A program made the translations under genes and the position numbers. DNA of 63,376 nt, the filler included, from Reticulomyxa filosa (lineage: Eukaryota > Protista > Foraminifera), in the NCBI GenBank assembly GCA_000512085.1. It is 18 parts of 18 records of this genome, joined end to end, with 100 filler letters (N's around TTAATTAATTAA, not from the genome) between each part and the next. Parts side by side here need not be neighbours in the genome. Positions count along the whole stretch, not along the records: positions 34,487 to 51,354 come from ASPP01006937.1; 17 more parts are not named here. One strand, written 5' to 3'. The number at the start of each line of letters is the position of its first letter. Positions within the stretch are counted from its first letter, which is position 1. The notes beneath the pieces are model-generated. The model was not told the DNA's origin, searched no databases, and was given only the letters and a program-made list of their open reading frames with translations. Positions 34,487 through 51,496 of this stretch are shown here, in pieces.

Positions 34487-35560
34487 ATAATAATAATGAT
34501 AATAATAATGACAATAGTGATAATGATAATACACAAGTGAGTACGACACAGGACAGTGAGCCCAAAAAAAAACCATTCAATCGAATTAAAAAAAGAAAAG
34601 CCACGAAATTTTCCAAGTATTTTGAAACACAAATTTCTTCGTTTCGTTCCATGATCGGACAATATGGCTATGTGGGTGGCCCTGTCGTCAATGGCTCATT
34701 TCCAAGTCATATCTTGCATAATCAACCACGTGTGCATTCCACTTTTTCAAAGACCTCGATGCAATTGATCCCCAATCGCAATATCTTTTGGACAGAGATT
34801 ACCAGTCAAAGCATCTCCAAACTATTGAAATGCTTTCTGCCCCATCCCTTCACCGACGACAGTGCCGATATTAACACTGATCCACTTGGTCGGGTCCGAC
34901 TTATTCATGGAAGTTGTGCGTGGACGCCCGAGCAATTAAATGTCGAAATGCAAAATGGCACGTGGCTAGGTGAGTTCCATTTCGATTTGTTTTGTATGCC
35001 ATCAAATTATATTTATGTGTGTATATCATGAAGGACCCATCGTCGTAAATTCGCACGACGAAATGGAAGCCTTATTATCGCTATCTTGCTATTCAAATTT
35101 GGAAAACAACACAACCAGTAACGATCATTTCAAAAAAACAAAGTCATCTCCATCAGATCAATTTGAACGCATTTATTGGCAATGGGTCGTCAAAGCCATT
35201 GGCGGAGAGTACACAAGTCTCTCATTATTCCCCTTTCCGATTTCTGAACGACATACCCCATTTTTAAAGGGGTATTTTGAATATATGGCCGAATTTTATC
35301 AAGATTTCTTTTATTCATATTCACAATCCGCTAAGACAAATCAACCTAGCTCTGCATCCGATCGCAGCAGTTCAGTCCCTGGGGATAACGATAACGATAA
35401 TGACGACGATGAAGATAATGATGACGATGAGGATAACAATGATGATAATGACAACAATGAAAATAGTCGCAGCAGTAATAACACGAATTCAAGACGTAAC
35501 AATAAAATAAGCAAAACATCAACAAAACACAAAAAAATTGGTCAAACCGACAAAAAGTGA
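34487..35560 (+). CDS. DUF179 / YqgE-AlgH (UPF0301) family protein, 5' truncated
   Basis: YVGGPV...ILH, RVRLIHGSCAWTPEQLNVEMQNGTW and YWQWVVKAIGGEYTSLSLFP match the GGPV, GY.GW...QL..E...W and W..LGG.Y motifs. Intron 34970-35033. Confidence 0.8.
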
Positions 35561-37694
35561 ACATAAACGAAGAACACCGACAAAAAAATCTCAAAAATCA
35601 TCACAAAACAACAAAGATCAAACCACAACAGACCAAAATAAATCATCCTAATTTCACAACATCTCAATCATTTTATTCTTTGCAGCATATTGTGTCTGTT
35701 GTCTCTATTTCGTTCACAAACAATTTTTTTACAAGTTATGTACACGGAAATATGACTTTTTGTCAACGTGTTCATTTCAACAAGTCTTTCATAATAGTCA
35801 AAACATAAGTCAAAAAAGGAGCGATTAATCGTGCCTCCTTAATATATTTTCAGGATTATTGCTTTTGGGGATTCAATATTTTGCCAGTTGACTTGGCTGT
35901 CACAAAGTGTATACGAAAATATTGCTCTCCAAGCAACTTTTCAATAAAAGACATCAATTAGATCAACAAAACAAAATTTAAACATACAAAAAAAATAATT
36001 TCAAATAACATTTAAAAAACATCAGAAAACAAATAAATACGTTAAATAATCAATACAATCATATAATCATTAAGATTATTATAAAGTAGCATAATGTATT
36101 TGATATTTTTTCTGCAAACAGCAGGTACGTGAAAAGGGTCTTGTTTAGAGTTTAACTAGAATTTTTCTCTTGTTAAAAAAAATCTGCATGACTTTTTTTA
36201 GTGAATTACGTAATTATGACAAAGAAAACCAGACGAAAAGTTTGAGGTTGATTTTTTATTATTGTTTATGTTTACACAGATAATATAAAAGAAGTCAAAA
36301 AAACTTCAAATAGTTACAATCACATTCAGAAATCCGGATACGAAAACATCCAAAATTAAAAAGAATAATTGATGAAGAAATCAATGTAAAAAATGATATT
36401 AAAGCTAATTAAATTTGTTTAAGATCAACTTTGTAAATTTAATCCAAGCTATTTTATAATTTTATTTGAATATTTCAAGAAATATATTGTTTGTTGAATG
36501 AATCCAGTAAGTTATGTTATGTTATATTATTAAAATAACCAAGAAAACAAGAATTATAAGAAAATACAACAACGTTATAAGTACTTGAAACATGCACTTC
36601 ATTGCGAGAAAATAATTATCAATACACATATAATGATGACAATAAAAAATTGATTTATATGATTGTTATCAATATATAATTGGTTCGCTAATAGAATAGA
36701 AAAAAAGAACAATAGTTCGTCATTCTTAAAAGATTTGCATAAAGAAAAATGTTAATTGATATAGATAACATCAACGAAAATAGTAATATTGATGAAATTA
36801 CTATATAAAGTAATAATTGCAAAAGCAATTATTATAACGGCAGTAATTTCACTATCGATATAATAAGCTTCAGTCAACAAACTATAAGCTTTAACACCAC
36901 GTTATCACATATCTAACGTTTTTTATCAAAAAATTTAACGGATGCTTACATCATCAACTATCTTTATTTCAAAAAGATCTCATTTTGCTAAAACAATTTA
37001 GTATGTATCTTTTCGGCATACAATTGCACTCATAAGTACATTCAGGTTTGGTGGTCTAATAATATTTATAATATTCATAACTGATATGACTACGATATCT
37101 TCAGACATACAATCATGAAAATTCAAACATTACGCTAAATACACCATAATAGCTTTTTATCAAGTATATCAGATTACGCTAACTAGTGACTTATGTTATA
37201 ATGATTGAAGCTTATACTAAGTACATCAACATCATAATGCAGCATCTAACATAGTAAGAGAACTAATATAGCTTATTCATAATATCATGCTACGTAGTTT
37301 ATATTAAATATTAGCTTTTAAGTCCACTTGTTGCTTGATCATAATGTGTCAATTGTGTCGTTATATAATTCACCAGTAAATGAGAAAACAACTTACAAGA
37401 ATTTTATACTACGTATTAAAAAGTATTTATAAAATAATCTAGACCTTAATTAATAAGTAACTTTCATATATCTCGAGTAAATTTAAGTAAATATATTATT
37501 TTTGTTAACTTGAGTTAACGAAGTAGTTTTTAGCACTTGAATGCCACTTTTTATTATTAACATTATACTATAAAAACATATAAAAATATTTCAATCATTG
37601 CTGAAAAAAGACTCAATTATTTTTTTTTAAAAGTTTTTATAAATTAGATGCTTGCTTTACTTGAACGAAGAAAGAACTTTGAAAATTCCATTTA

Positions 37695-38240
37695 TGTCAT
37701 TTGAAACTTTGCCACTTTGCATACTTCAGACATACCTGAGCATTTCGTAGCATACAAAGACGAAATACTCACGTGTGATATTTCAAGTTGGTATCCTTAT
37801 CATACAATCAAAGAACAGTATAAGCTGTAATTCATTTCCACAGAAGTTGCGTAGTGAAACTTATTAATAATAACAACAATAAAGACAAAAATGAAATAAA
37901 TTTGCTGTCTTTTGGTGAAAACAGTACAAATGTTCGGTAATGAAATATGTTAGTGTTTGAGAAAATGAAAATGAAAGTGTAAATAAAAGTAAGAGAAGCA
38001 ACTATCAACGAATTACAATATATTGAATTATTTAATAGACAGTAATAATAACAATGAAGGAAAAATAGAATGCGTGCAGTGATTGGGGAAAGCAATAATA
38101 ATTTATTATTTATCACTTTCATAACTAAAATTAGCGTGTTTGATTTAAATACATTTTACTGTATTAAAAAATATCGTTTACAATGTATTTTTGAATCCAT
38201 GCTTTATAATGGAAGAAAAAAATTATATTATCAAATCCAT
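37695..38240 (+). pseudogene. Kelch-like beta-propeller family pseudogene
   Basis: Frameshifted fragments FETLP, YKDEILTC, YHTIKEQYK, CVVKLINNNNNKDKNEINLLSFGE, VMKYVSV* and RAVIGESNNNLLFITF..KISVFDLNTF. Confidence 0.75.
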
Positions 38241-38848
38241 ATTGACTGTGAATATTAACACGAAAAGAACTTAGTTCAAAATACGAGTTTCAGTAAAAAG
38301 AAAGTAAATTAATAAAAAATAATTATAACAAAACAAAGAAAGAGTAAAGCAATATATAAAGTTAGTTATGTTTTGAAGAAAATTTTAATTAGGACCTTGA
38401 ACTAATAATATGTACTTATTATAAAACAGTTTTTTCTAATAACAAACATATAACTTTGTGATAAATATTGTAGTTCCGAAAAATTGCACATTCATCATAC
38501 TTTTAAAAAATTATTATCATATCTATAATTTAAAAATGATTATTTCATAATGATAATTTTTTAAAACAAAAAACATCTCATATCACTTCATTTTATTGTT
38601 TAGTGGATTTGCAAGTATTGCTGTATTAATTCAATATTTGTTGTAGTCTCGAAATATTTACAATGTATTTGCTCCGTAAACTGATAGCAAAATGTCCATT
38701 AGTAATTGTTATAAAAAACAAAAAAACAATTTTCTCACAAAGGACTGGTTTCCATGGACAAAACGGAAAAGCAACAAACTTAATTTCTCCCCTTTTTTAA
38801 ATGTTTATTGTGTCTTCTTTCATGCATCTTCGGCCAAAGAAATAAGTA

Positions 38849-41581
38849 ATGCTTGCCACATGCAATCCTCGACTCTCTCGAACCTTGGTTCTTGTGTGCA
38901 AAATCTCAGCACGTTCGTCTTCTCAGTTGTTTCGCAACGGCACAGCACTGCGTATATATAAATATCGTGGAGGGCAAAGGCCATCACGCCCGGTTCAACC
39001 CATATTAAATGGGCAAACGCAGAAGCAAATTTCGCGACAACACGTGACAACACAGCCTTTGCCGAACACAAGAAAATTCCAACAAATTCTGGCTCGTGTT
39101 CCACCATGGCGCTCCCCTCGTATGTATTATGGAACACTATTCGTATCGGCGTTGTTTTACTATAGTTACCGTCAATTTAGCGCACATATGTTTCGAGCAG
39201 AAACAGAAACGTCCGAATTTTCGTACGACGAATTTCTAAAATATTATTCGGACAGCGAGAATGACGAAGAGGAGGAGCAGAAAAAGGACAAGGTGGAAGA
39301 AGATGAATCAAAAGAAGAGACAATAGAACATCATCGTTACAAGATATTGCACTCGATAAAATTGCCAGAACATAGCAAATGGGTATGGTTTTGGTTATAT
39401 TTTAAGCGTTGCATGTTTTTAATTTATAACTTCACTCCACTCATTTTGCTATCGCCATTGGCTTATTGGTATTGGCAACACGACGACCATTACTTTAAAA
39501 GAAAATGGTTACAGCTTTTGTTAGACTCTTTCAGCAACGCAGGTTACGTGTTTGTTTCTTATATATAATACATATATCATTTATTTATTTATTTATTTAT
39601 TTTATCTCTATTTATTAGATTATATGCATATATTAAAATTATAAACATAAATCAAGGAAGCACGTTTATTAAAATGGGCCAATGGATGTCCATGAGAAAT
39701 GATGTCTTTCCAATGGAAATATGCAAAACATTTGCACATTTGCGTGTGAATGCACCCATGCACTCGTTCGAAGAAACGTGCAAACTCATCGAAAACTCGT
39801 TTGGAAGACCTATCGATGACATATTCGAACGCTTTTATGTCGAGCCCATTGCGAGTGGATCTATTGCACAAATCCATCGCGCTCAAATACGAATCAATCA
39901 ACACAATGGGCCGCTGGTCCCAGGTCTTTTTTTTTTTTAAAAAAAAAAAAATTATACATATGTATATATGTTAGGAGGGGATCATGTGAGCATGTCAATA
40001 CGAAAATACGTCTCCCATATGTGCGTGTGTGTGTGTGTGTGATATACACAAAGAAATGTTCGAAGCAAATGCGGAATACGAAATTGAAGTGAAAGACAAT
40101 TTATGGACCCGTATAAAAAAATCATGGAAAAAGGCAAAAGAAAAGAGACGACTATGGTCGACAAGCACGGGCGAAGACAGTAACGTTCCGCGATACTTGG
40201 ATGTCGCTGTAAAAGTGCGCCATGGGGAAGTGCTGCAGACAATGGCAATGGACATTAACTTGTTGTATATGGGAAGTAATTTCATATCCAGTTTGCCATT
40301 TTTGAAAGGACTAAAAGTCCCCATTTATCAGCCCGATTTTGCCGATTATTTGGAGTCACAAATCGATCTGTCGTTAGAAGCCAAGTCTTTGAAGCGATTC
40401 AATCAAATTTTCAAATACGAGCGACACATTGTCGTTTTTCCAAAGCCTATTTTCCCTTATGTCACAAGTGATGTTTTAGTGGAAACATGGGAATCAGGTA
40501 CTTTATTGTTGAGTTTGCAATCGTCTCTTCAACCAAAGCAAAAATAAACAATGGACTAAAGGTATCCCATTGTCGCGATTGGATTTTTCCAAAATTCACG
40601 AAGAAGATCTAAAGCAGCTCTCGAGAAAGTCGTATGACATCTTCATGAAAATGATGCTTCGAAACAACTTTATTCATGGCGATTGCCACACTGGCAATGT
40701 GTTGGTTCGATTTGAACAAGAGTATTTCGGTTCCACCGCCAATTCCATCAGTGCAATGTATCGAAAGTTTTGGGATCGCTTCATTGGCAAAGTGGAGGCA
40801 CCTCTCACGATGACGGAGTCCATCACTCCCAAGTCCAATGATAGTCGCAAGCCCTATCCCTTTGGTCCATTGGTCTTTTTAGATGCTGGATTGACCGTTA
40901 GTTTAACTAGACAAGGTATCAAACGGTATGTTAGATAAAAATTAATTTCTTTTCTTATAAATTTTCGATCGTCAATATGACTGAATGTACATATGTGTAT
41001 ATATAAAAGATTTGGTATATTGCTGGGTTATATTGCGCAAGGAAATAGCGTGGAGGCAGCCAGGTTGTTTAGTGAATGGACGATCATTGACAGATCGGAT
41101 CCAACTGCCATAAGTAGGAAAGATCAATTTGCAGCTGATTTAGCACATGTGATCGACGAGAATTTGAAATGGAGAAACCCAAAAAAACCTCGAACAGGCA
41201 TCCCTTACATGGATGTTGGCAAGCTAATTCGAGATGTTTTATTTTTGACACAAAGGGAGCGTATCTTATTGGATTCTCATTTTAGTGCTACTATTGCCGC
41301 ACTTGGAGTCATTGAAGGTTATTTTCATATGTGCATAAATATATTTATACATACATATTTGTGAAATTTTTTTTTTTTTTTTTTTTTAAGGCTGGCATCA
41401 TGCATTTAGCTTTTACTTTGTTCTGACAGGACTTATTCGAGAATTAGACAGCGAAGCCGATTTCTTAGCTTGGGGAGTACCTTATTTGGTGAAATACCGT
41501 GGGTTGTCGTTATTGTCTGGACTCGTTCGTGAACACGAACAGTTATTACATTCTCTCACTGATGAGATTGCAAGGGATTAA
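38849..41581 (+). CDS. ABC1/UbiB atypical kinase, ADCK2/Cqd1-like, mitochondrial
   Basis: FIKMGQWMSMRNDVFP, PIASGSIAQIHRA, VAVKVRH, QIDLSLEAKSLKRF, VLVETWESG, NNFIHGDCHTGN, FLDAGL, LGVIEG|LIRELD; R/S-rich presequence; about 6 exons. Confidence 0.92.
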
Positions 41582-42042
41582 AACAAAATTTATTTGACTT
41601 TTTTTTAAATCATTATCATTGAAACGCTTTTTTTCGCACAGATTCCATCTTTTATAATATTTTTCTCCTTTTGGTCATATTACTGAGTATTGAACTAGCC
41701 CTTTCCCCCTTTTTTTGTTATTTTTGCTATTCTTATTTGTCTTGTTATCACACTCCTCTCCTTTTTTTGTTAACCATCAACAACCAACACTGTGTTGAGC
41801 TTGTTTGTTTAACAATTGGCTATGTTCTTTTTCAAAAAGACAACATTTTGCTTCGAATAATAAATATTGTCTCATAAGAACGATTACATCTATTCTTTTT
41901 TTAGAGATTTGAAACAGTTGTTTAATTTGCTTTCTTTTGATCTATCAATCAAGTTACAAATTTTACTTAGAATTGCTACGAAGAATTTAATTTAAAAAAG
42001 ATATTTTAACTACTTGCGTAGTTTTCACTCCAAAAGTCCACA

Positions 42043-43131
42043 ATGAAAAACTCACGCGATATGGATTGGCTACTTTTAAGCGAGGATTTGTGGCGCTATA
42101 TTTGTTTATTTCAGTTCAGGAGAGAGACAATATCGCTATTATTTACGTGTAAGCAACTACACAAAGACTTAGATCCTCGTCACTCGAAAAACAACAGTCT
42201 GTGGGCAACTTTAAAAAAATATGATATCCCATACCTCTTGGATAAACGTGTTGCATTTTGGTGTGAACATATTCTACAAAAGAACAAAATGACCCACAAT
42301 GACTGCTTTGCACTAGATCTTACCTTGACACAATTTGCGAAGTTAAATGAAGACGTGTTGAAAAAATTACAATATTGGCTGCAATACCAAAGTCTTTTTG
42401 CAACTGGCGATAAAACTGTTATTGATCCATTAGAGCATTTAACAGGTGAGTTTTTTTAAAGGAAGGCGTACAATAAACTTTATTTGGAGTCATAGAACGA
42501 AGAGAAGTAACAACGAAAAAACTCTATTATTGTTAATTTGCATTGCACCTAAAAAACTCACGAAACTAAACTAATCAAAGACATGCGCCTATACGGAAAC
42601 GATAAACACTTTGGGAGTAAAGGAATGAATTGGCTGATTCCAATATTGACGAGCAAGTATTGCCAACTAAGAATAGTTAATTTGCAATCTTGCGGCTTGT
42701 GTAATGCAGATATTGAAAATTTGTATGGTGCTGTCCTATCTTGTCAACAAAATATGGAGAATTTGACTAATTTTGATATTGGTTGGAACACTCAGTTGGA
42801 CAACCAAGCTCTGGAATTAATGCTTGCTCTCTGTGTTGAAAAATGGAAAAATCTGGTCGAGTTGTGTGTCCATGGATGTAAAGTAGACGATGCTGGTTGT
42901 GAAATTTTTGAAAAATGGGCGAAAAAACATGCTTCCAATTCGGACAATTTTTGTTTGCAGCGATTGGACCTACGTTGTAATACGTCGATCACGAGGGTTG
43001 GGCTTGACATTTTAAATAAGGTTTTAAAAATGCAATGCATGCAAAAAGATAGATGGAAAAAGTTTACTATTTTTCTTATCAATGTACCAAGTGCCCGAGA
43101 AAAAACTTTTGACCCCAGAATGCGATTTTAA
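42043..43131 (+). CDS. F-box-like plus RNI-type leucine-rich repeat protein
   Basis: LLSEDLWRYICLF...LLFTCKQL (F-box-like); LRIVNLQSCGL, LTNFDIGWNTQL, LVELCVHGCKVDDAG, LQRLDLRCNTSIT; intron starts ~42447. Confidence 0.75.
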
Positions 43132-43457
43132 TAAAAACTGGCAGTATTTCCTTGTTTTTTAATAGTGTTGATACTAGTTTTGTGTTGTGCAAAATGTAGA
43201 AATGTTGATGTTAAAAAGAAAATGGAAAATGAACAAAAAAATGCAACATTCTCCAAAATCACCAACAATTTGGACTTGAATTGAAAAGCTTTCCTTTGAT
43301 TGCAGGAAAGTGCCTTTTTTTTGTGCCACAAATCATTGTGTAACCAACAAAAAAAAAAATTATCATGTCGGAAATAATACATCAACGCAAATGCGCTCCT
43401 AGCCCCCACTTAAAATACACACGCAAATTTGTGTGTTTATGAGATTTCTCTAGAAGC

Positions 43458-44416
43458 TTATTCTCGAGTTCGCAACGCTTTAGTTACTTTTTTTTGATTT
43501 TTTCTTTGCTTTTTGTCAGTCAATTCCAAACCTGGTTTCCTTGAAAATAATGCACGAGTACGTGAGCGTGGAACTTTTTGTTGCCTTTCTTCAGCAAACA
43601 ATTCAATGTGGCATTGATGACTGTTGAATGCTATATATTTTTCCCCCAGACACAAACATTGTTAAGACCTTTTTTGACACCATCAAATTTATTTTAATTT
43701 TACAAAAGTGCAAAGTAAATTCAAAATTGAACGTAAGAAGAGACAACAAAAATTAAATGAAATAATTCGCTTAACGGTTGATTCGGCCGTGAGCTCGGTA
43801 TGTTCTTCGTCGTCCTTGTCTGGCTCTTTGTACGGCGATGTGTGAAATACGAATTTTTTCCATGTTCAACTTTTTAGCTCGAGCATTTCCTTCCACGTTT
43901 CGGAGCAAATCCAACAAAAACATGGCTGATTTCTTTGGCCAACGTCCTTGTGAGCTACCCAAACCTTTACATTGGCCATGTCTTCCAATACGACCTGCAA
44001 AACAAATTTTGCAAATTTGCAATTTAAGATTCACTTTGAGTTAAACTTTTTTTTCCACCCCTTAAAAAAAAAAGATGCGAAATAGAGTGGTGTTTTTTAT
44101 TTTTTGAGGGGAAAATATTTTTTGTTTGATGTTAGGAAGAATTGATTTTACCAGTGTGTCGGCGATATGGAACAATTTCTTTTTGTTTAATCACATTTTT
44201 CAAAAATCGTCTTGCACGAGGAAGGGTCATTGATTTTAAGCAAACTGCTGTTTCACGAGTATTTTTGTAATGCACTCGCAATGAATCACCACGAGCTTTC
44301 GCTGCTCTGTTTGTTTGAACAAGAAATGTTTATTTTTAGTACAATGACACAAGGACAACATGTCATTACCTTGCCCAGTCTTGGCATTTTGGCTGTTTCA
44401 ACATATAATTGACCAT
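43458..44416 (-). CDS. RPL17: 60S ribosomal protein L17 (uL22), 4 exons
   Basis: AKARGDSLRVHYKNTRETA, VPYRRHTG|RIGRHGQ, QGRWPKKSA, RRRTYRAHGRIN, SHQCHIEL. Confidence 0.97.
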
Positions 44417-44867
44417 CTTTCTTGTTGGTGTTTTGCAGGAATAAGATCAAACTAAATATTGAAAAGATTTTGTTTTTGCCCCCTTTTGGCTCCCTGTTTT
44501 AAACCTTACAATACTTTAAGAGCTAGGTTTGTAGCGCAGATATATATTAATTAATTCTTCTTCTTTTTTGCCATTGTTTTATTTAAAGGTATGCTGTATT
44601 GTTTTATTCATTTCTGAAAAAAAATTAGGTTTGGTTTAAAGGAGGATTTTTAAAAAAAAAATTGAACGAGAAGAGGTATAAAAGGAGTTTATTTGAAGAA
44701 TTCAATAAAGAGTGTAAACTCATCTTTTGGAATGTCTTTGTTAATCTAAGGTTAAAAAACTTCAGTGAGACCAAAAGACAATCAATCCGAAAAAGATCAA
44801 TGTCACTCCAAGTGCAATAAAACAACATCAGCAACAAAAACTGTTGATCATATGAGCATTCATTTGA

Positions 44868-45225
44868 TTATTGAGCGTTGCTGTTCGGAGATTTCTTTTT
44901 TGGTCCGCCAGTTGCTGCTTCCATAACCTTCTTTTCGTCTGTTCAAATAAAAACGCATACATTTTTTCTTCAGAAAATACACATAAATTTCCAAAGAAAA
45001 TTATCAAGGCTTACACATCAATCTTTTCTTTGCTCGTCCCAAAGGCGTTTTCTTCTTTGGCTGCTTTTCTACTTTTGGAGTGGCAGCACGAACTTTGCCT
45101 GCGCGTGATAATGAGCCGTGTTGTTTTCCTGCATGTGTTGTTTGCAAAAATTTGAACACATTTTCAAAATTAAGCTGAAAATAAGATAAATGAGAATGTT
45201 AAAAGTTTAGAGACAACGAACCCAT
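44868..45225 (-). CDS. RPS30: 40S ribosomal protein S30 (eS30), not fused to a ubiquitin-like domain, 3 exons (missed by the ORF track)
   Basis: Exons 45225-45222 (ATGG), 45128-45015 and 44938-44868 give [62 protein letters not shown]. Confidence 0.95.
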
Positions 45226-46384
45226 TTTAAAATGATAGGATAGAAAAAAGCGAAAGCACCTTATAAAGTGTTGTAATTATTATTGAACGTCTCCCCCTTG
45301 GCTACTTGACTTTAACCGGATTAATTACATTATAGTGTTTTAATAAAATCAATGAGTAAAGCAAAATTATTTAACTTGTTGCAAAAAAAATCTAACTACT
45401 CTAATTATTGGCCATAAATTAAAGTTGACATATTTCATTATAATTCATGAATACATTTTTGTTACCGTTTAGTAAGTTCACAAGCGCCAAACATAAAACA
45501 AATGAAGTAATCTAACGAACAATACAAGCACTTTATACAATTGGCCGGTCTGTAGCACAAATCGCTCTGGTAAGAGTAAAACTCAAAGGGAAATAGAACA
45601 CTTTTTTTCCCTAAAACCTTACTTCTTCAGTTCTTCACTTGTTTCTCTTCTCGTTATTGTTTTGTCATTTCATTCATTTGAATTAGCCATCTGTTCTTAT
45701 TTTGTCGAATTACTTAAAGCGCTCTTTTCGTATTACACTTTGTGCAAGTCTTCAGTAAGGAAAGTCTAGTTTGTTACAGAAAAAAAGATTATAAAATGCA
45801 CATAACAATATCAAAAAACTCTCATAATTAGACCTGTGAGAGACTATTCTTTTAATTTTAATGTCTATCACAACATAGTGATAGTAGTGATCCCAAAGTC
45901 GTGGCATTGAACATTACTTTTAATTACTCTTTTCGGCTTAATTTTCATTTACATATAATCACCAATAATATTCAAGATTATTTTTCTACATTACACTGCT
46001 TTAGAACAGCAGTTATTGTTTGAAACGTTTTTGTAACTGGTGCACAACAAACTCAATAAAAATACATTTTATATATTAATCAATTAGACATTTTCCAACA
46101 GTATACTAGTACAACAAAAGTTTATTTCTTTTATTCCTTTCATTGTTTGCTTACAATGCCCTCCGTCTTTTGGATGAGCAGCTTTTGTTGAACTAGTACA
46201 AACATGTTGCTATTTTTTGTGCATCGTATCTGAATTACAAACATTACTTTTTATTATGCTATCAGTTATTTTGAGTTCTTTGATACTACTTTGTTGTGTT
46301 TAACGAGTGTTTAGTGACTGAACAAGAGTGTAAAGGGACATATCCTTCTCAAGAGATTAAATCTCTTTTTGCTTAAAATCAAAG

Positions 46385-47841
46385 ATGTGTTTCGGTTGTT
46401 GTTGTGATATCTTATACGAAACGAGATGTATCTTTTTTCGTTTATCTAGTATCCTTATGTTGCTTGACTTAGCCTTAACCATATTCATAATTGTTCAACT
46501 CTTCCAACTGGATGTCTTTGCATGCTGCACTGACAATTTAACGCTCAACAGTCAATGCTCTTATGTAAGTTTGCAATATATCTGTTATACTTTTTTGTAT
46601 CACAAGTTTGAGGACATGAAACAAATGCAATTTGGCTGGTTGTTGGATGTGTTCAACAGTCGAAAATCGGTAAATATTGCTATTTTTGCGTGCTCTTCGT
46701 GTGTTTTGAGGAAAAAATTGTTACTACCAAGTGGCCACTAGTTTTCCAAATTATTGATTTTTCCTTTTTTATTTTAAAATATATTAGGCGGAGCAAGCAA
46801 CGTTGGAGTTGATAGCAATGGTTATTGCATTCAAAAGAGCTCTGACACTGACTGCGCAGGCGATTTAGCCTCTTGTGCAAACTCCAGTTGAATACGTATT
46901 TTTATACTTTTTTTTTTTTTTTTTGAGCCAAAAAAAAAAAAAAACAAACAAACAATAAAAAACGAATAAATAAAGAATGCTCTGTGGATATGAGTACGTT
47001 ATGCTCTGAGAAGATTCTTGATGAAGTGGCAAGCACAAACTGGGATTGGTTACTGGCAATTTTAATAGTCAAAGCAGCCGGTCTTGTGTTTTTAATTACT
47101 TTGGAAATCCGCTCGTTATGCAAAAGCAGAGAGAAAGCAAACGATCAAAATAATCCTGATCGAAAACGAGAACCTGGTGAAGAAGATGTTGAGGCTACAG
47201 TAGGATGTTGTGAAAGATGTAAACAATGCAGGCATGTTTTCTTTAAAAAAAGAATAATAGTGGTTCAATTATAAAACAATGACGATTTTTTATTTTTATG
47301 TGCAAACGATAGCTTGGCGAACTTGAAGAGCTGCTTGACAAACACAACTATTTTTGTGTTGAAACTATTCTTTTTAATTTTTGGAACAGGTAATTTGTGT
47401 TCATTTCTCTTTTGTTATTTTTATTTTTTTAAATACACGAAACGCTAAAAATTTTGTTGACAACAATAAATTGAAATAGCTACTACTACAATCGCTATTT
47501 GGCTTTTGGTTTACACTAACCGTGTCACGTTTACCAACTGCCGTGCCATATCAGACAGTCAATTAAGAAGTGATTGCTTCAAAGTGGAAGAAAATTGTAC
47601 ATTTGGAGATGGACAAAACTTTTATATTGTGGTATTTAACAATTTAAATTTAACAGGTACATTTTCGCTTATCTTTTTTTTTTTTATCGTTTGTTTATGA
47701 TTTCAAACTCTGTTTTTGTTTTTTGTTTACAGGTCCGTACATTGTCGATTTAATAACGTCTGCCTCCACCACAGTTCTTTGGATTGTTCGATTCGCTGTG
47801 TTGCGCTACTATCTTAACAAGACCAAATTGACATCTGTTTA
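46385..47841 (+). CDS. Hypothetical Cys-rich multi-pass membrane protein, multi-exon
   Basis: Several hydrophobic helices alternate with Cys-rich loops; GT-AG introns, e.g. 46887-46975 and 47390-47479. Confidence 0.55.
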
Positions 47842-48694
47842 ATTCTTTTTTGATTAGGAAATATGATTTGTTCAAAATTGTGGACTTCTTGTAAAGGCGT
47901 TTTTTTAATTATGCAACAATGAATAGTAAATTTTCAAGTTCACAAAAAAAACTTCTGAAACGAGAAATGCATATTTTATTAAAAAAGTTGTTGAAATCTT
48001 GACAACAAGAAATTTTGGTATTTTTGGATCTATTCAAACAAAGACACATTTTTATTTTGTCTTGTGTCTGGTTGAAAGCACTTATTCTCATGGGTGTATG
48101 TGCGTTATGGATCAGAATTAATTTTTAGCACATTCTTTAATGATATAATATCATAACAAAAATATCACGTCTGTTTAGTACTGTTCGTTGTTGAGGAAAT
48201 ATAAATTGTCGTCATCTTTTATTTGGTACGCTCGTCAACGTACTGTCTTTACACCTTCTGATATTGACTATCAAAACACATGTTTTACGCAAACTTTGGT
48301 AAAAGCACTTGGTTTTCGAAAACTTTTTTCTAAAAATTCCCGTTTAGAAACTACGCTCAAACACAAAAGAAAAACAGAATTACGGTAGGTGCGTGACTTT
48401 GTTTGGAGTTTAAAGATGTGTAATACCTTTTAGCATGTAAAAAAAAGCACCCTGAAAAACATTTCTATCAAGTGAGCAAGCTAATTCAAATTGGCTACTT
48501 AAGATTTCAACTAAAAAACACTTAAAGTAGTTTTTTCATTTGGAGAAAGACAAATAAATAATTTTTGTGCGACTGAAAACCTGCAAAGAGAGCGTACCGT
48601 AGAGTTTGTGGCGTTTCAGAGGGATAAAATTTTGAGTTCAATATCCCTTTTTTTGAATTCTTGTTGGGAAATTGCAGATTAAATCTTAATTGAA

Positions 48695-49466
48695 ATGGGA
48701 AACGATTTTTCTGTGCAAGTACTTTTATTTTAATTAATTTTTTTTTAAAAAAATGTGTTTGTTAGTGTTCGAACTTGTTTTTGAAAACAAACAAAAAACA
48801 AAAAAGACACTAAAAGTAAAATCAAACATGGCTTCAAGCCGAATGAAGGCCCATGTTCAAAAAAAAGAAAACGCAATGACAAAGCAAAGACGTGAAATTG
48901 CAACTCTGTTAGTGGACGGAAAGGAGCAATCGGCACGTATAAAAGTGGAAGGTTTGATACGCGAAGAAAATCTGTGTCGTGTGATGGAATGGTTGGAAAT
49001 TATGTGTGATTTGGTCAATCAAAGAGTGAAGCAGATCCAAACATCCAAGTTTGTGATGTGTCTTTTTTTTTTTTTTTTTTATAATTTTTTTTTTAGTTGT
49101 TACAAAATTGGATACAATTTTGGTCTACCTCTTCTGCCTCCCCCGTTCCCTCCCCCCTTTTTCCCTTTTCCTTCGCCTATGCTAATGAAACCAATCCGCA
49201 AAATTAAATTGGCTCAATACACACGGTTCATTGACATCAAATAAATAAACAAACATTGAAATTGCAAATCCCAACCTCACAATGGGAATCTCAATCCCAA
49301 TATCAATCCTCGTGTAATCGCTGTTGAATACATGGCTTGTGTTGAATGATATAGAGAGTGTCCCGAAGACTTGGCCGAGTCTGTTTGCACCATTTTGTAT
49401 TCTTCCAAACGAATTGACATTCCTGAATTAACCGAGGTCTCTATCTCTTTACTGCCACACAGTACA

Positions 49467-49503
<37 letters not shown>

Positions 49504-51040
49504 TAAACAAAAGATATCACAACAATTTGCTGGAAAATGGGGCAGCAAATGGCTGGAAGAAAATATTGAGAATCGATCTGGCCGAGTGTCCAAACAGGTT
49601 TGCTTTTTTTTTTTTTTGTAACTTTGCATCCACACAGCATACGTGGAATGCACGAACGCAGGCCGAGTGCAAAGAGGGATGAGTCCCTCCAAACAAATAC
49701 TATGCCATTAAGACAATTGCACAACACAACATAACATAACATAACACAAAGGTGATAGAAAAACTCAGTCCAGAGCCTCCTACTCGCGAAACGGTGATCA
49801 AAAAACTCAAAAATATCGCGGATGAGTTTGATGTGGATTGGAAGCCCAACACGATTGAGCAAGATGAATCCATGCCCGCTATCATTGGTCACCGAAATGA
49901 AGTTGCTTTTTTTTTTTTTTTTAAACAGACAAATAAATAAATCAAATATATATATACATATATATGTATATATATATATTTATATTTATATATATTTGAT
50001 TTATTTGTTTATTTATTTATTCATTTGTTTATGCACTTATGAAATAGTACACAATCGAATTCGACAGTAAACCATTCGGAATGGAATGGACCGAAACAGA
50101 AGACGGAAAAAATCTTTGGGTGAGCAGCGTTCTTCCAAAGTCGGAGTCTGCGCGAAAAGGTGTTGTGCCGGGGTCTTTGTTGATTGCATTGAATGGAATT
50201 GATATTAAAGATTTGGGCGCCCCTTCCATTCACGACAAAGCTTCATCTTGCGGCTTGCCTTTGCGAATTACCTTTCAAAAACCGGACGGTATCAATGCCC
50301 CTTCGCAACCCAAAGTTTACTTGTGTGAAAAGTATTCCTCTCCCCTCCTCCTTCCTTCTCATGTACACGTTTTTGTTGAACATAATACACAGGATATGAA
50401 GGTAGATCCAAATGTTGTCAACAAATGCATCAAACTACTCAAAGATCCAACTTCTTGGGAACTTAGCGATAAACAAAGAGAAGAAATGTGCAAGAAGCAG
50501 GGTGCAAATCCAGCTGAAGTCGCTTCTGCCATTTTCCTGGCTAAACATATGGTTTGCGTTGGTTTCTTTAACCTTTTTTTTTTTTTTTTTTGAATTTCAA
50601 TATGACTTATATGTTTTGTGTATGTACAAGATCGAGAATGCCAATGCAAAACCACAATATGAAACAATGACCTCCAGTTATGATAACGTTGTGACGACAC
50701 AATACCCTGGTCCTTCCAACAGTGACTTTCCGCCTCCACCTGCCTACACTGAACCAATGGACGGAAATATGACATATGCTCCTGGCGCTGCCGATTATGG
50801 AACTATGAATCCTAATGAAAGTCCTCCTGCTACTACTGAATTGGACTTACCTGATCCTAAACCAAGTTTGTTTTTTTTTCTCTCGTTTATGTGTTCATTC
50901 GGTTGGTTTGTTTTTTTTTGGCTTATCCATTTGATTCATTGTCTGTTTGTTGTGCTTTCTTTAATTAATCAGAAGGAAATTCCGGCGGTGATTTGGACGA
51001 CCTTGAAGCTAGGTTTGCCAATCTCAAAAAGGGCTTATAA
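48695..51040 (+). CDS. IST1: IST1 (ESCRT-III-like regulator of VPS4) with extra PDZ and Pex14_N-like domains, 9 exons
   Basis: Exons 48695-48718, 48807-49048, 49355-49436, 49514-49597, 49752-49901, 50048-50314, 50393-50551, 50631-50865 and 50973-51040 join in frame. Motifs RREIATLL..GKEQSARIKVEGLIRE, LEIMCDL, IPEL, KLSPEPP; C-terminal DDLEARFANLKK (MIM1). Confidence 0.92.
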
Positions 51041-51496
51041 AAACTAAGGTTCGATTAGTTCATTTTTACTAGTGTCTTTTTTGTTTGTTTTGACTTTTTT
51101 TTAAGTATGTCAATTAAATAAAAAAAAATTTTTTTGCACTGTCGCCTCACCACGAGGAAATTTCATTTTTCTTTTTTAAGTGTTTTGGTATTCAACCGTT
51201 GTCTACCTCCTTAAGTTTGTTTCACAGAATATCTTATATACAATTCGTAAGTTCTCCTCTTCCATTGAATTTCTTTTAAATTTTTGCCAAAGATCCGAAA
51301 TTCAAATTTTTTTGGATAGGATAGAGACAGCTGTTTTCATAAAATAAAGCAAAANNNNNNNNNNNNNNNNNNNNNNNNNNNNNNNNNNNNNNNNNNNNTT
51401 AATTAATTAANNNNNNNNNNNNNNNNNNNNNNNNNNNNNNNNNNNNNNNNNNNNTTTTTTTTTTATTATCGTATGTAATTTGTAAACAAAACAGTC

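Follow-up and report, generated by a model that had tools for sequence, protein, structure and literature searches.

How many genes lie at positions 48695-51040 of the window, the whole stretch of Reticulomyxa filosa DNA analysed here (63,376 nucleotides, filler included), and what do they encode? GenBank places two genes at this locus, at window positions 48753-49940 and 50081-51047, and the second (ETO27984.1, RFI_09151, X6NQL4_RETFI) is named "PDZ domain-containing protein". An earlier note, made from the sequence alone, had joined nine exons into one reading frame for the ESCRT-III family protein IST1, with a PDZ domain and a helical domain resembling Pex14_N between the core and the C-terminal MIT-interacting motifs (MIM). 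Comparison with relatives indicated that one gene is the likely answer: the R. filosa IST1 orthologue, carrying PDZ and Pex14-like inserts in the tether that leads from the core to the MIM. To our knowledge, nearly all ESCRT-III family proteins consist of a bare helical core followed by a disordered tail with short motifs, and contacts with cargo or organelles are made by separate adaptors. A whole lineage appears to have built two folded interaction modules into the IST1 tail, a natural experiment on the targeting of ESCRT-III polymers that also places the Pex14-type fold in a new and tractable setting. The microtubules and membranes of foraminifera are known for being extremely dynamic. The relevance to ESCRT and peroxin evolution is moderate to high, limited by the obscurity of the lineage.

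The source piece (window positions 34487-51354) is the whole 16,868-nucleotide contig ASPP01006937.1 of R. filosa, a freshwater foraminifer (assembly GCA_000512085.1). Sequence inspection and three-frame translation, checked by script, gave a gene on the plus strand with nine exons (E1 to E9, Table 1) and GT-AG boundaries at all eight introns. The exons, frames and peptides given in the earlier note were all present and join in frame, and its coordinates for the start, the end, the PDZ exon and the helical exon were exact. The coding sequence of 1311 nucleotides encodes 436 amino acids and contains one TAA, the terminal stop codon, with no internal stop. The protein is made, in this order, of the IST1 core, the PDZ exon, a three-helix exon, a Pro-rich linker, a MIM2-like motif and MIM1.

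Evidence for a single mRNA came from transcript-derived orthologues and from genomic contigs of relatives. Searches were run exon by exon or with database orthologues; exons were joined only for the frame check and for tree building (E1-E5). A HMMER search with the open frame 50048-50551, which covers E6, intron 6 and E7, found 96 proteins, and further ones came from a word search with P0014, a full-length relative, as the query; a word search with region 185-345 of P0014 returned only P0014 itself and one relative. Local hidden Markov model (HMM) scans of the fetched proteins revealed three architectures. Clade A has core, PDZ, Pex14-like module, linker and MIM1, and comprises Reticulomyxa (two copies), Elphidium, and other EukProt and environmental sequences. 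Clade B (P0014, P0102, P0103) has core, Pex14-like module, PDZ, linker, two MIM2-like motifs and MIM1. Clade C (P0108-P0117, P0119, P0091) has core, Pex14-like module, linker and MIM1, and lacks the PDZ.

P0105 (487 amino acids, from Elphidium margaritaceum, transcriptome MMETSP1385), P0106 (474 amino acids), P0107, P0104 and P0118 each contain the N-terminus, Ist1 core, PDZ, helical module, a linker rich in Gln and Pro, and MIM1. Blastp of the individual exons placed E2 to E7 on contiguous residues of P0105 (9-86, 92-117, 118-145, 146-195, 196-284 and 285-336), with residues 1-8 as the counterpart of E1 and the C-terminus as that of E9. Orthologue N-termini read MGNAYNTQ or MGNGYSTQ, followed by TLKVKSKMAS as in E2. 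Identity was 65-71% for E2 (residues 9-88 of P0105 and P0106), 61-71% for E4 (residues 118-145 of P0104, P0105 and P0106), 70-78% for E9 (C-termini of P0105 and P0106) and 52-74% for the PDZ and helical modules in clade A orthologues. Judged from these alignments, the exon-by-exon match to contiguous orthologue residues is far more than chance would give. The environmental contigs L003 and L004 (JGI) and L002 (Logan ERR1740124, with a complete coding sequence of 483 amino acids) are also single open reading frames spanning core, inserts and MIM1. The placing of the PDZ and helical exons within the IST1 mRNA was therefore borne out by single open reading frames in Elphidium MMETSP1385, EukProt, JGI and Logan orthologues.

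L004 carries an in-frame TAG at the conserved Trp codon of F-A-G-K-W (L004:66-68, JGI 3300030741 contig) in an otherwise continuous open reading frame. Sequencing error, allelic variation or a pseudogene transcript may account for this codon.

Genomic relatives were consistent with this arrangement. In contigs L006, L007 and L008 the Ist1 open reading frame lies directly upstream of the PDZ open reading frame on the same strand; L006 and L007 hold the E5, E6 and E7 equivalents in one continuous, intronless frame, and L008 has an intron before the PDZ. In R. filosa itself, a second copy (L005, ETO25941.1) is divided into exons E6-E9 in the same way, with 60-69% identity to the window copy over E6, E7 and E9 and 36-54% over the introns.

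These data bear directly on the annotation as it stands, according to which a short IST1 ending in intron 5 is followed by a separate gene for the PDZ protein RFI_09151. The two GenBank calls speak for this arrangement. However, the downstream model starts at a Met inside the PDZ, retains intron 6 (open in frame), splices intron 7 correctly and retains intron 8; it loses MIM1 because it reads through intron 8 and finishes out of frame. MIM1 and MIM2, elements of an IST1 tail, stand at the end of the supposed second gene, the orthologues are one open reading frame, and E5 and the PDZ share one exon in L006 and L007, all of which leaves two separate genes scarcely credible. We conclude that ETO27984.1 and its upstream GenBank neighbour are two halves of one gene and that the R. 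filosa records at this locus should be merged. The split makes the fused architecture invisible in public records of R. filosa. The paralogue model ETO25941.1 likewise omits the MIM1 exon that its own locus contains at L005:1061-1123.

A single gene could still yield canonical IST1, also or mainly, if E6 and/or E7 were cassette exons. The end of E5 and the start of E8 are in phase 0, as are both ends of E6 and of E7, so that E5 and E8 join in frame, and skipping of the two symmetric exons would leave a canonical IST1; this possibility counts against a protein that always carries both inserts. Both modules are nevertheless present in all transcript-derived orthologues and are conserved across clade A at the identities given above, and in L006 and L007 they are not skippable because the introns are absent there. 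We consider cassette exons unlikely and retain the nine-exon transcript.

The core exons match the Pfam Ist1 family (PF03398) piece by piece along its profile. E2 scored 72.7 bits (4.4e-20, profile positions 1-78), above the curated cut-off of 33.6 bits; E3 matched positions 80-106 (E 6.4e-5), E4 occupies positions 107-135 and E5 matched positions 136-164. Over the full profile the orthologues score 138-157 bits, with P0105 and P0106 at 138-148 bits over positions 1-163. The C-terminal motifs proposed in the earlier note also found counterparts in other IST1s. MIM1, DLDDLEARFANLKK, shares the terminal motif DDL..RF..LK with 10 of the 13 insert-free IST1s compared, a likeness of the motif only, and has counterparts in DDLAARFANLKK of P0127 (an IST1 by its source's name) and DDLTKRFEELKK of the shrimp IST1 P0133. 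The MIM2-like ELDLPDPKP resembles, again as a motif only, the F-x-LP-x-[VLP]-P motifs of insert-free IST1s, and its relatives are FDLPDPP and FGLPDVP in P0103, FNLPDVP and FDLPSVP in P0014, and FNLPSVP in P0133. In human IST1, MIM2 (residues 325-329) and MIM1 (352-363) stand in the same order (PMC4475061).

Compared with canonical IST1 (human IST1, yeast Ist1), the Reticulomyxa protein is alike in its full Ist1 core, Pro-rich linker, MIM2-like motif and terminal MIM1 of the form DDL..RF..LKK, and unlike it in having two folded domains between core and linker and two extra C-terminal residues, GL. The N-termini also differ. Insert-bearing IST1s, including those of the window, P0105, P0014, P0103 and P0108, all begin MG[NK]xx[S/T/N], a consensus context for N-myristoylation (MGNxxS, a possible myristoylation site, in Reticulomyxa), whereas the 13 insert-free IST1s begin MDF.., MFS.. 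or otherwise. The MG[NK]xx start may serve these IST1s as a lipid anchor specific to the clade. The only canonical ESCRT-III protein known to us to be myristoylated is CHMP6/Vps20.

The E8 linker had no Pfam match. It contains a motif, [Y/F]PGPSNSDFP (window 50700-50730), that is shared with P0002 and P0003, occurs in both Reticulomyxa copies and is not found in the Q-rich marine orthologues; as a short linear motif, it may mediate binding.

The PDZ assignment of E6 was upheld by profile and structure comparisons, though its Pfam score (18.8 bits) did not reach the PDZ cut-off (PF00595, 23.2 bits). Clade B PDZs pass this cut-off (P0103 at 30.5 and P0014 at 23.5). A phmmer search of E6 against PDB sequences gave 56 weak matches, almost all PDZ, and a 55-sequence family profile (A2) matched 269 distinct PDB sequences at E<=0.001; the best 60 of these 269 were all PDZ-containing proteins, led by syntenin-1 (2.5e-13). 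The AlphaFold2 (AF2) model of E6 has a predicted local distance difference test score (pLDDT) of 89 and five strands and two helices by DSSP, in the PDZ pattern. Foldseek found 332 PDB matches to this model at E<=0.001, and the best 50 of the 332 were all PDZ (probability 1.00, template modelling (TM) score 0.65-0.80). The K-P-F-G-M loop agrees with the x-Phi-G-Phi motif that binds carboxylates, and the Gly in it hardly varies. On the strength of profile and model, E6 is a true PDZ domain.

The same PDZ subfamily occurs in other protist architectures: ubiquitin with PDZ, PDZ with a UBA-like region, and large membrane proteins. A ubiquitin-like domain precedes it in P0020 and P0045, and in P0028, P0036 and P0043 (environmental proteins of about 430-470 amino acids) it is followed by a weak UBA_4-like region. 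These neighbours suggest that the PDZ family is tied to the ubiquitin and sorting pathways of the protists concerned.

A possible ligand for the PDZ is the protein's own conserved C-terminus (...LKxGL-COOH), whose binding would mask MIM1 as an autoinhibition or join subunits head to tail. Clades A and C both conserve the GL that follows MIM1, and a hydrophobic C-terminal residue suits a PDZ groove. Clade C, however, has the GL ending and no PDZ, clade B has the PDZ but ends in NNMGN or NGV, and position -2 is variable. Self-binding to the ...KxGL tail therefore fits the distribution poorly, and we judge it very unlikely. A complex prediction for the PDZ and its own C-terminal tail (P0003) scored 0.00, which is no answer and is evidence neither way.

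For the helical exon, the likeness to Pex14_N proposed in the earlier note held for the fold, with Foldseek, VIA and Atlas all pointing to PEX14, and did not hold for the Pfam sequence model. The AF2 model of E7, made template-free from the family alignment alone, has a pLDDT of 90, with helices at residues 6-16, 26-35 and 40-52 and a short turn at 19-21. Foldseek against 350,542 PDB chains ranked PEX14 N-terminal domains (human, rat, T. brucei, T. cruzi) from 1 to 11, with TM scores of 0.70-0.81 and a root mean square deviation (rmsd) of 1.0-2.3 Å; the accompanying E-values of 0.6-1.5 are uninformative because the module is so short. With the VIA aligner, five PEX14 representatives took ranks 1-5 among 48,161 (Z 8.0, 7.7, 7.4, 7.4 and 6.4), and the next fold was RecX at Z 5.9. 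The top four matches of an ESM Atlas fold search were PF04695 clusters (TM 0.74-0.84). Like the PEX14 N-terminal domains (2w84, 3ff5, 5aon), the module is predicted to be a bundle of three helices with a short turn separating the first two, and it superposes on them over 45-53 residues with an rmsd of 1.0-2.3 Å and TM of 0.76-0.84. The modelled helical exon very probably has a Pex14_N-like fold.

Common descent with Pex14_N is a further step, towards which we lean with some reserve, and several observations weigh against it. At the level of sequence, the module fails every test for Pex14_N: E7 had no Pfam match, Pex14_N (PF04695) included; none of 15 helical-family members matched the Pex14_N model at E<=10; and PDB sequences gave no PEX14 match with E7 (phmmer) or with profiles A1 and A3 (15 and 27 members). 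Identity to the PEX14 domains is only 14-20%. In a language-model feature search, Pex14_N clusters came first for the window copy, weakly at 0.79, and a clade C copy gave no Pex14 lead in the Atlas. Mapped on 2w84, human F52 corresponds to M32, a conserved hydrophobic position (M/L/I/V/Y), K56 to Q36, which is variable, and F35 to another variable position. Binding of PEX14 to PEX5 and to microtubules requires both F52 and K56 (bioRxiv 10.1101/2020.07.23.218024). The module lies inside IST1 and not, like its PEX14 counterpart, at the N-terminal end of a peroxisomal membrane protein; the transmembrane or coiled-coil context of PEX14 is absent. Finally, small helical bundles can reach a Z of about 8 by chance; the argument for PEX14 rests, for this reason, on its consistent and exclusive enrichment across three libraries.

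Much of this would also be expected of a generic three-helix bundle that merely converged on the PEX14 shape, had no Pex5-like, WxxxF-like or tubulin ligand, and served perhaps as a spacer or as an intramolecular regulator of IST1. The lack of a Pfam or PDB sequence match even with 27-sequence profiles, RecX-type bundles at Z 5.9, the variable K56- and F35-equivalent positions and the Atlas feature search of the clade C copy all suit convergence. What it accommodates less readily is that PEX14 took the first ranks in every fold search, VIA, Foldseek and Atlas alike. Moreover, residues 21-73 of human PEX14 (2w84) align without gaps over all 53 residues of E7 and pair L16/L36, G37/G57, E42/E62 and A46/A66, the human residues L36, G57, E62 and A66 being those we take to stand at these positions. 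Helix 2, the ligand face of PEX14, is also the most conserved stretch of the module. Convergence is a possibility to be taken seriously, at less than even chance, and homology to Pex14_N is the reading we carry forward. A UBA-like identity, raised by the weak UBA_4 matches in P0028, P0036 and P0043, was rejected, with no UBA among the top 50 fold matches. Phmmer searches of E7 and of E9 against PDB sequences returned nothing relevant.

When and in what order were the two modules acquired? The relatives of the helical module detectable among 1.84 billion representatives were all in an IST1 context or were fragments consistent with IST1. In the IST1-core tree, clades A, B and C formed one clade on a long branch (100/100 support), apart from 13 insert-free IST1s, with B sister to A + C (89/92); in the window row of this tree (E1-E5) the first 8 residues are wrong, E1 being 2 nucleotides off, and the topology is unaffected. 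In the PDZ tree, which has 90 columns only and was made by a quick method, the A and B PDZs fell in different subclades, and forcing them together cost 71.7 log-likelihood units (approximately unbiased (AU) test, p 6.5e-5). As judged from these trees, the Pex14-like insert was probably gained once, anciently, and the PDZ was probably inserted later, twice independently, once on each side of it. The apparent capture of a PDZ twice at different positions argues for selection on the PDZ/Pex14-like pairing.

The earlier note had seen exon shuffling in the fact that each extra domain is exactly one phase-0 exon. This pattern is present in both Reticulomyxa copies; the inference of shuffling is weak because introns are missing from these boundaries in the relatives L006 and L007. 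An exon-per-domain pattern cannot alone show how the PDZ and helical domains arrived.

The view that the architecture is not common held up. Among the sequences compared, it is confined to foraminifera-like sequences, a foraminifera-centred IST1 subfamily, and a full-text literature search found no description of an IST1 carrying PDZ and Pex14-like modules. Pfam architecture searches miss the fusion because the clade A PDZ is below the cut-off and the helical module has no model. The protein is a real, conserved, lineage-specific and apparently undescribed IST1 variant. The earlier note had named three findings that would speak against it, namely exons missing from the mRNA, a helical exon lacking the fold, or an architecture already common; none of the three was found.

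What might such a protein do? Its core would polymerise on membranes like canonical IST1, and the MIM2-like motif and MIM1 would recruit VPS4 and other MIT-domain proteins. The PDZ groove could bind the C-terminal ends of membrane proteins or adaptors, or else lipids, and the Pex14-like bundle a short amphipathic helical motif of a partner. Every subunit would thus display two extra docking sites, which would make the polymer its own adaptor. The most specific version of this proposal, which we put forward as doubtful, is that the module is a highly diverged Pex14_N homologue, recruited once and still binding aromatic amphipathic helices (the C-terminal helices of beta-tubulin or a PEX5-like receptor), so that IST1 polymers are tethered to microtubules or peroxisomes and the twice-captured PDZ brings in membrane-protein tails. 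If true, it would be a self-contained adaptor between cargo, cytoskeleton and ESCRT-III, and the first case of a Pex14_N-type domain at work in a protein that is not a peroxin.

Known systems offer partial parallels. In animals, PDZ adaptors, syntenin among them, link cargo to ESCRT-III in trans, via ALIX. This syntenin-ALIX-ESCRT-III route is the closest functional analogue, since it couples a PDZ to ESCRT-III and syntenin-1 is the best sequence match of known structure; unlike it, the Reticulomyxa PDZ lies covalently within an ESCRT-III family subunit and is not a separate tandem-PDZ adaptor acting through ALIX. CHMP7 is an ESCRT-III family protein with an extra globular targeting region, which is N-terminal and ESCRT-II-like and is not a PDZ/Pex14-like pair inside the C-terminal tether. 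M1 spastin recruits IST1 and CHMP1B at contacts between lipid droplets and peroxisomes (PMC10822820). That system also links IST1 to peroxisomes and to microtubule-severing enzymes, but the mammalian link is made in trans, by MIM-MIT binding to spastin, without a Pex14-like module. Yeast Ist1 was judged dispensable for peroxisome vesicle scission (PMC5987711).

Table 1. Coding features of the R. filosa IST1 gene, in window positions
Feature	Position	Strand	Content
E1	48695-48718	+	start codon, MGNDFSVQ; MG-x-x-x-S motif
E2	48807-49048	+	IST1 core, N-terminal half; ends in phase 2 (AA|GTTTGT)
E3	49355-49436	+	IST1 core, ECPEDL...ELTE; Pfam Ist1 and blastp
E4	49514-49597	+	IST1 core, ISQQFAGKW...RSGRVSKQ
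E5	49752-49901	+	end of IST1 core and short spacer finishing ...GHRNE
E6	50048-50314	+	PDZ domain; 267 nucleotides, 89 codons, phase 0-0
E7	50393-50551	+	predicted three-helix Pex14_N-like fold; 159 nucleotides, 53 codons, phase 0-0
E8	50631-50865	+	Pro/Tyr-rich linker, presumably disordered; contains YPGPSNSDFP
MIM2-like motif	50838-50864	+	ELDLPDPKP; resembles IST1 motifs
E9	50973-51040	+	MIM1 helix DLDDLEARFANLKK at 50990-51031, C-terminal GL, TAA at 51038-51040

GC content at the locus is 0.43 in exons and 0.12-0.40 in introns, and donors starting with GTTTG or GTTTA are found in five of the eight introns. An alternative splice between E2 and E3 (49052|49359) was rejected; it loses the conserved Glu of K-E-C-P-E-D-L, and its donor is unlike the usual GTTTG. 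Intron 5, the most AT-rich (GC 0.12), holds a zero-spacer palindrome of 49+49 nucleotides with 84% complementarity just upstream of the PDZ exon (window 49922-50019), which could be the remnant of a hairpin-forming insertion or simply low-complexity sequence. Intron 3 contains an (AAT)n microsatellite of about 11 units at about 49471-49503. Elsewhere on the contig, other genes lie at window positions 34537-35031, 39674-40938 and 43771-44034; the genes seen are an AlgH-like/DUF179 open reading frame (plus strand), exons of an ABC1/ADCK atypical kinase (plus strand) and an exon of ribosomal protein L17e/L22p (minus strand). A very AT-rich stretch with a GC content of 0.23-0.27 extends from about 35.5 to 38.5 kb.

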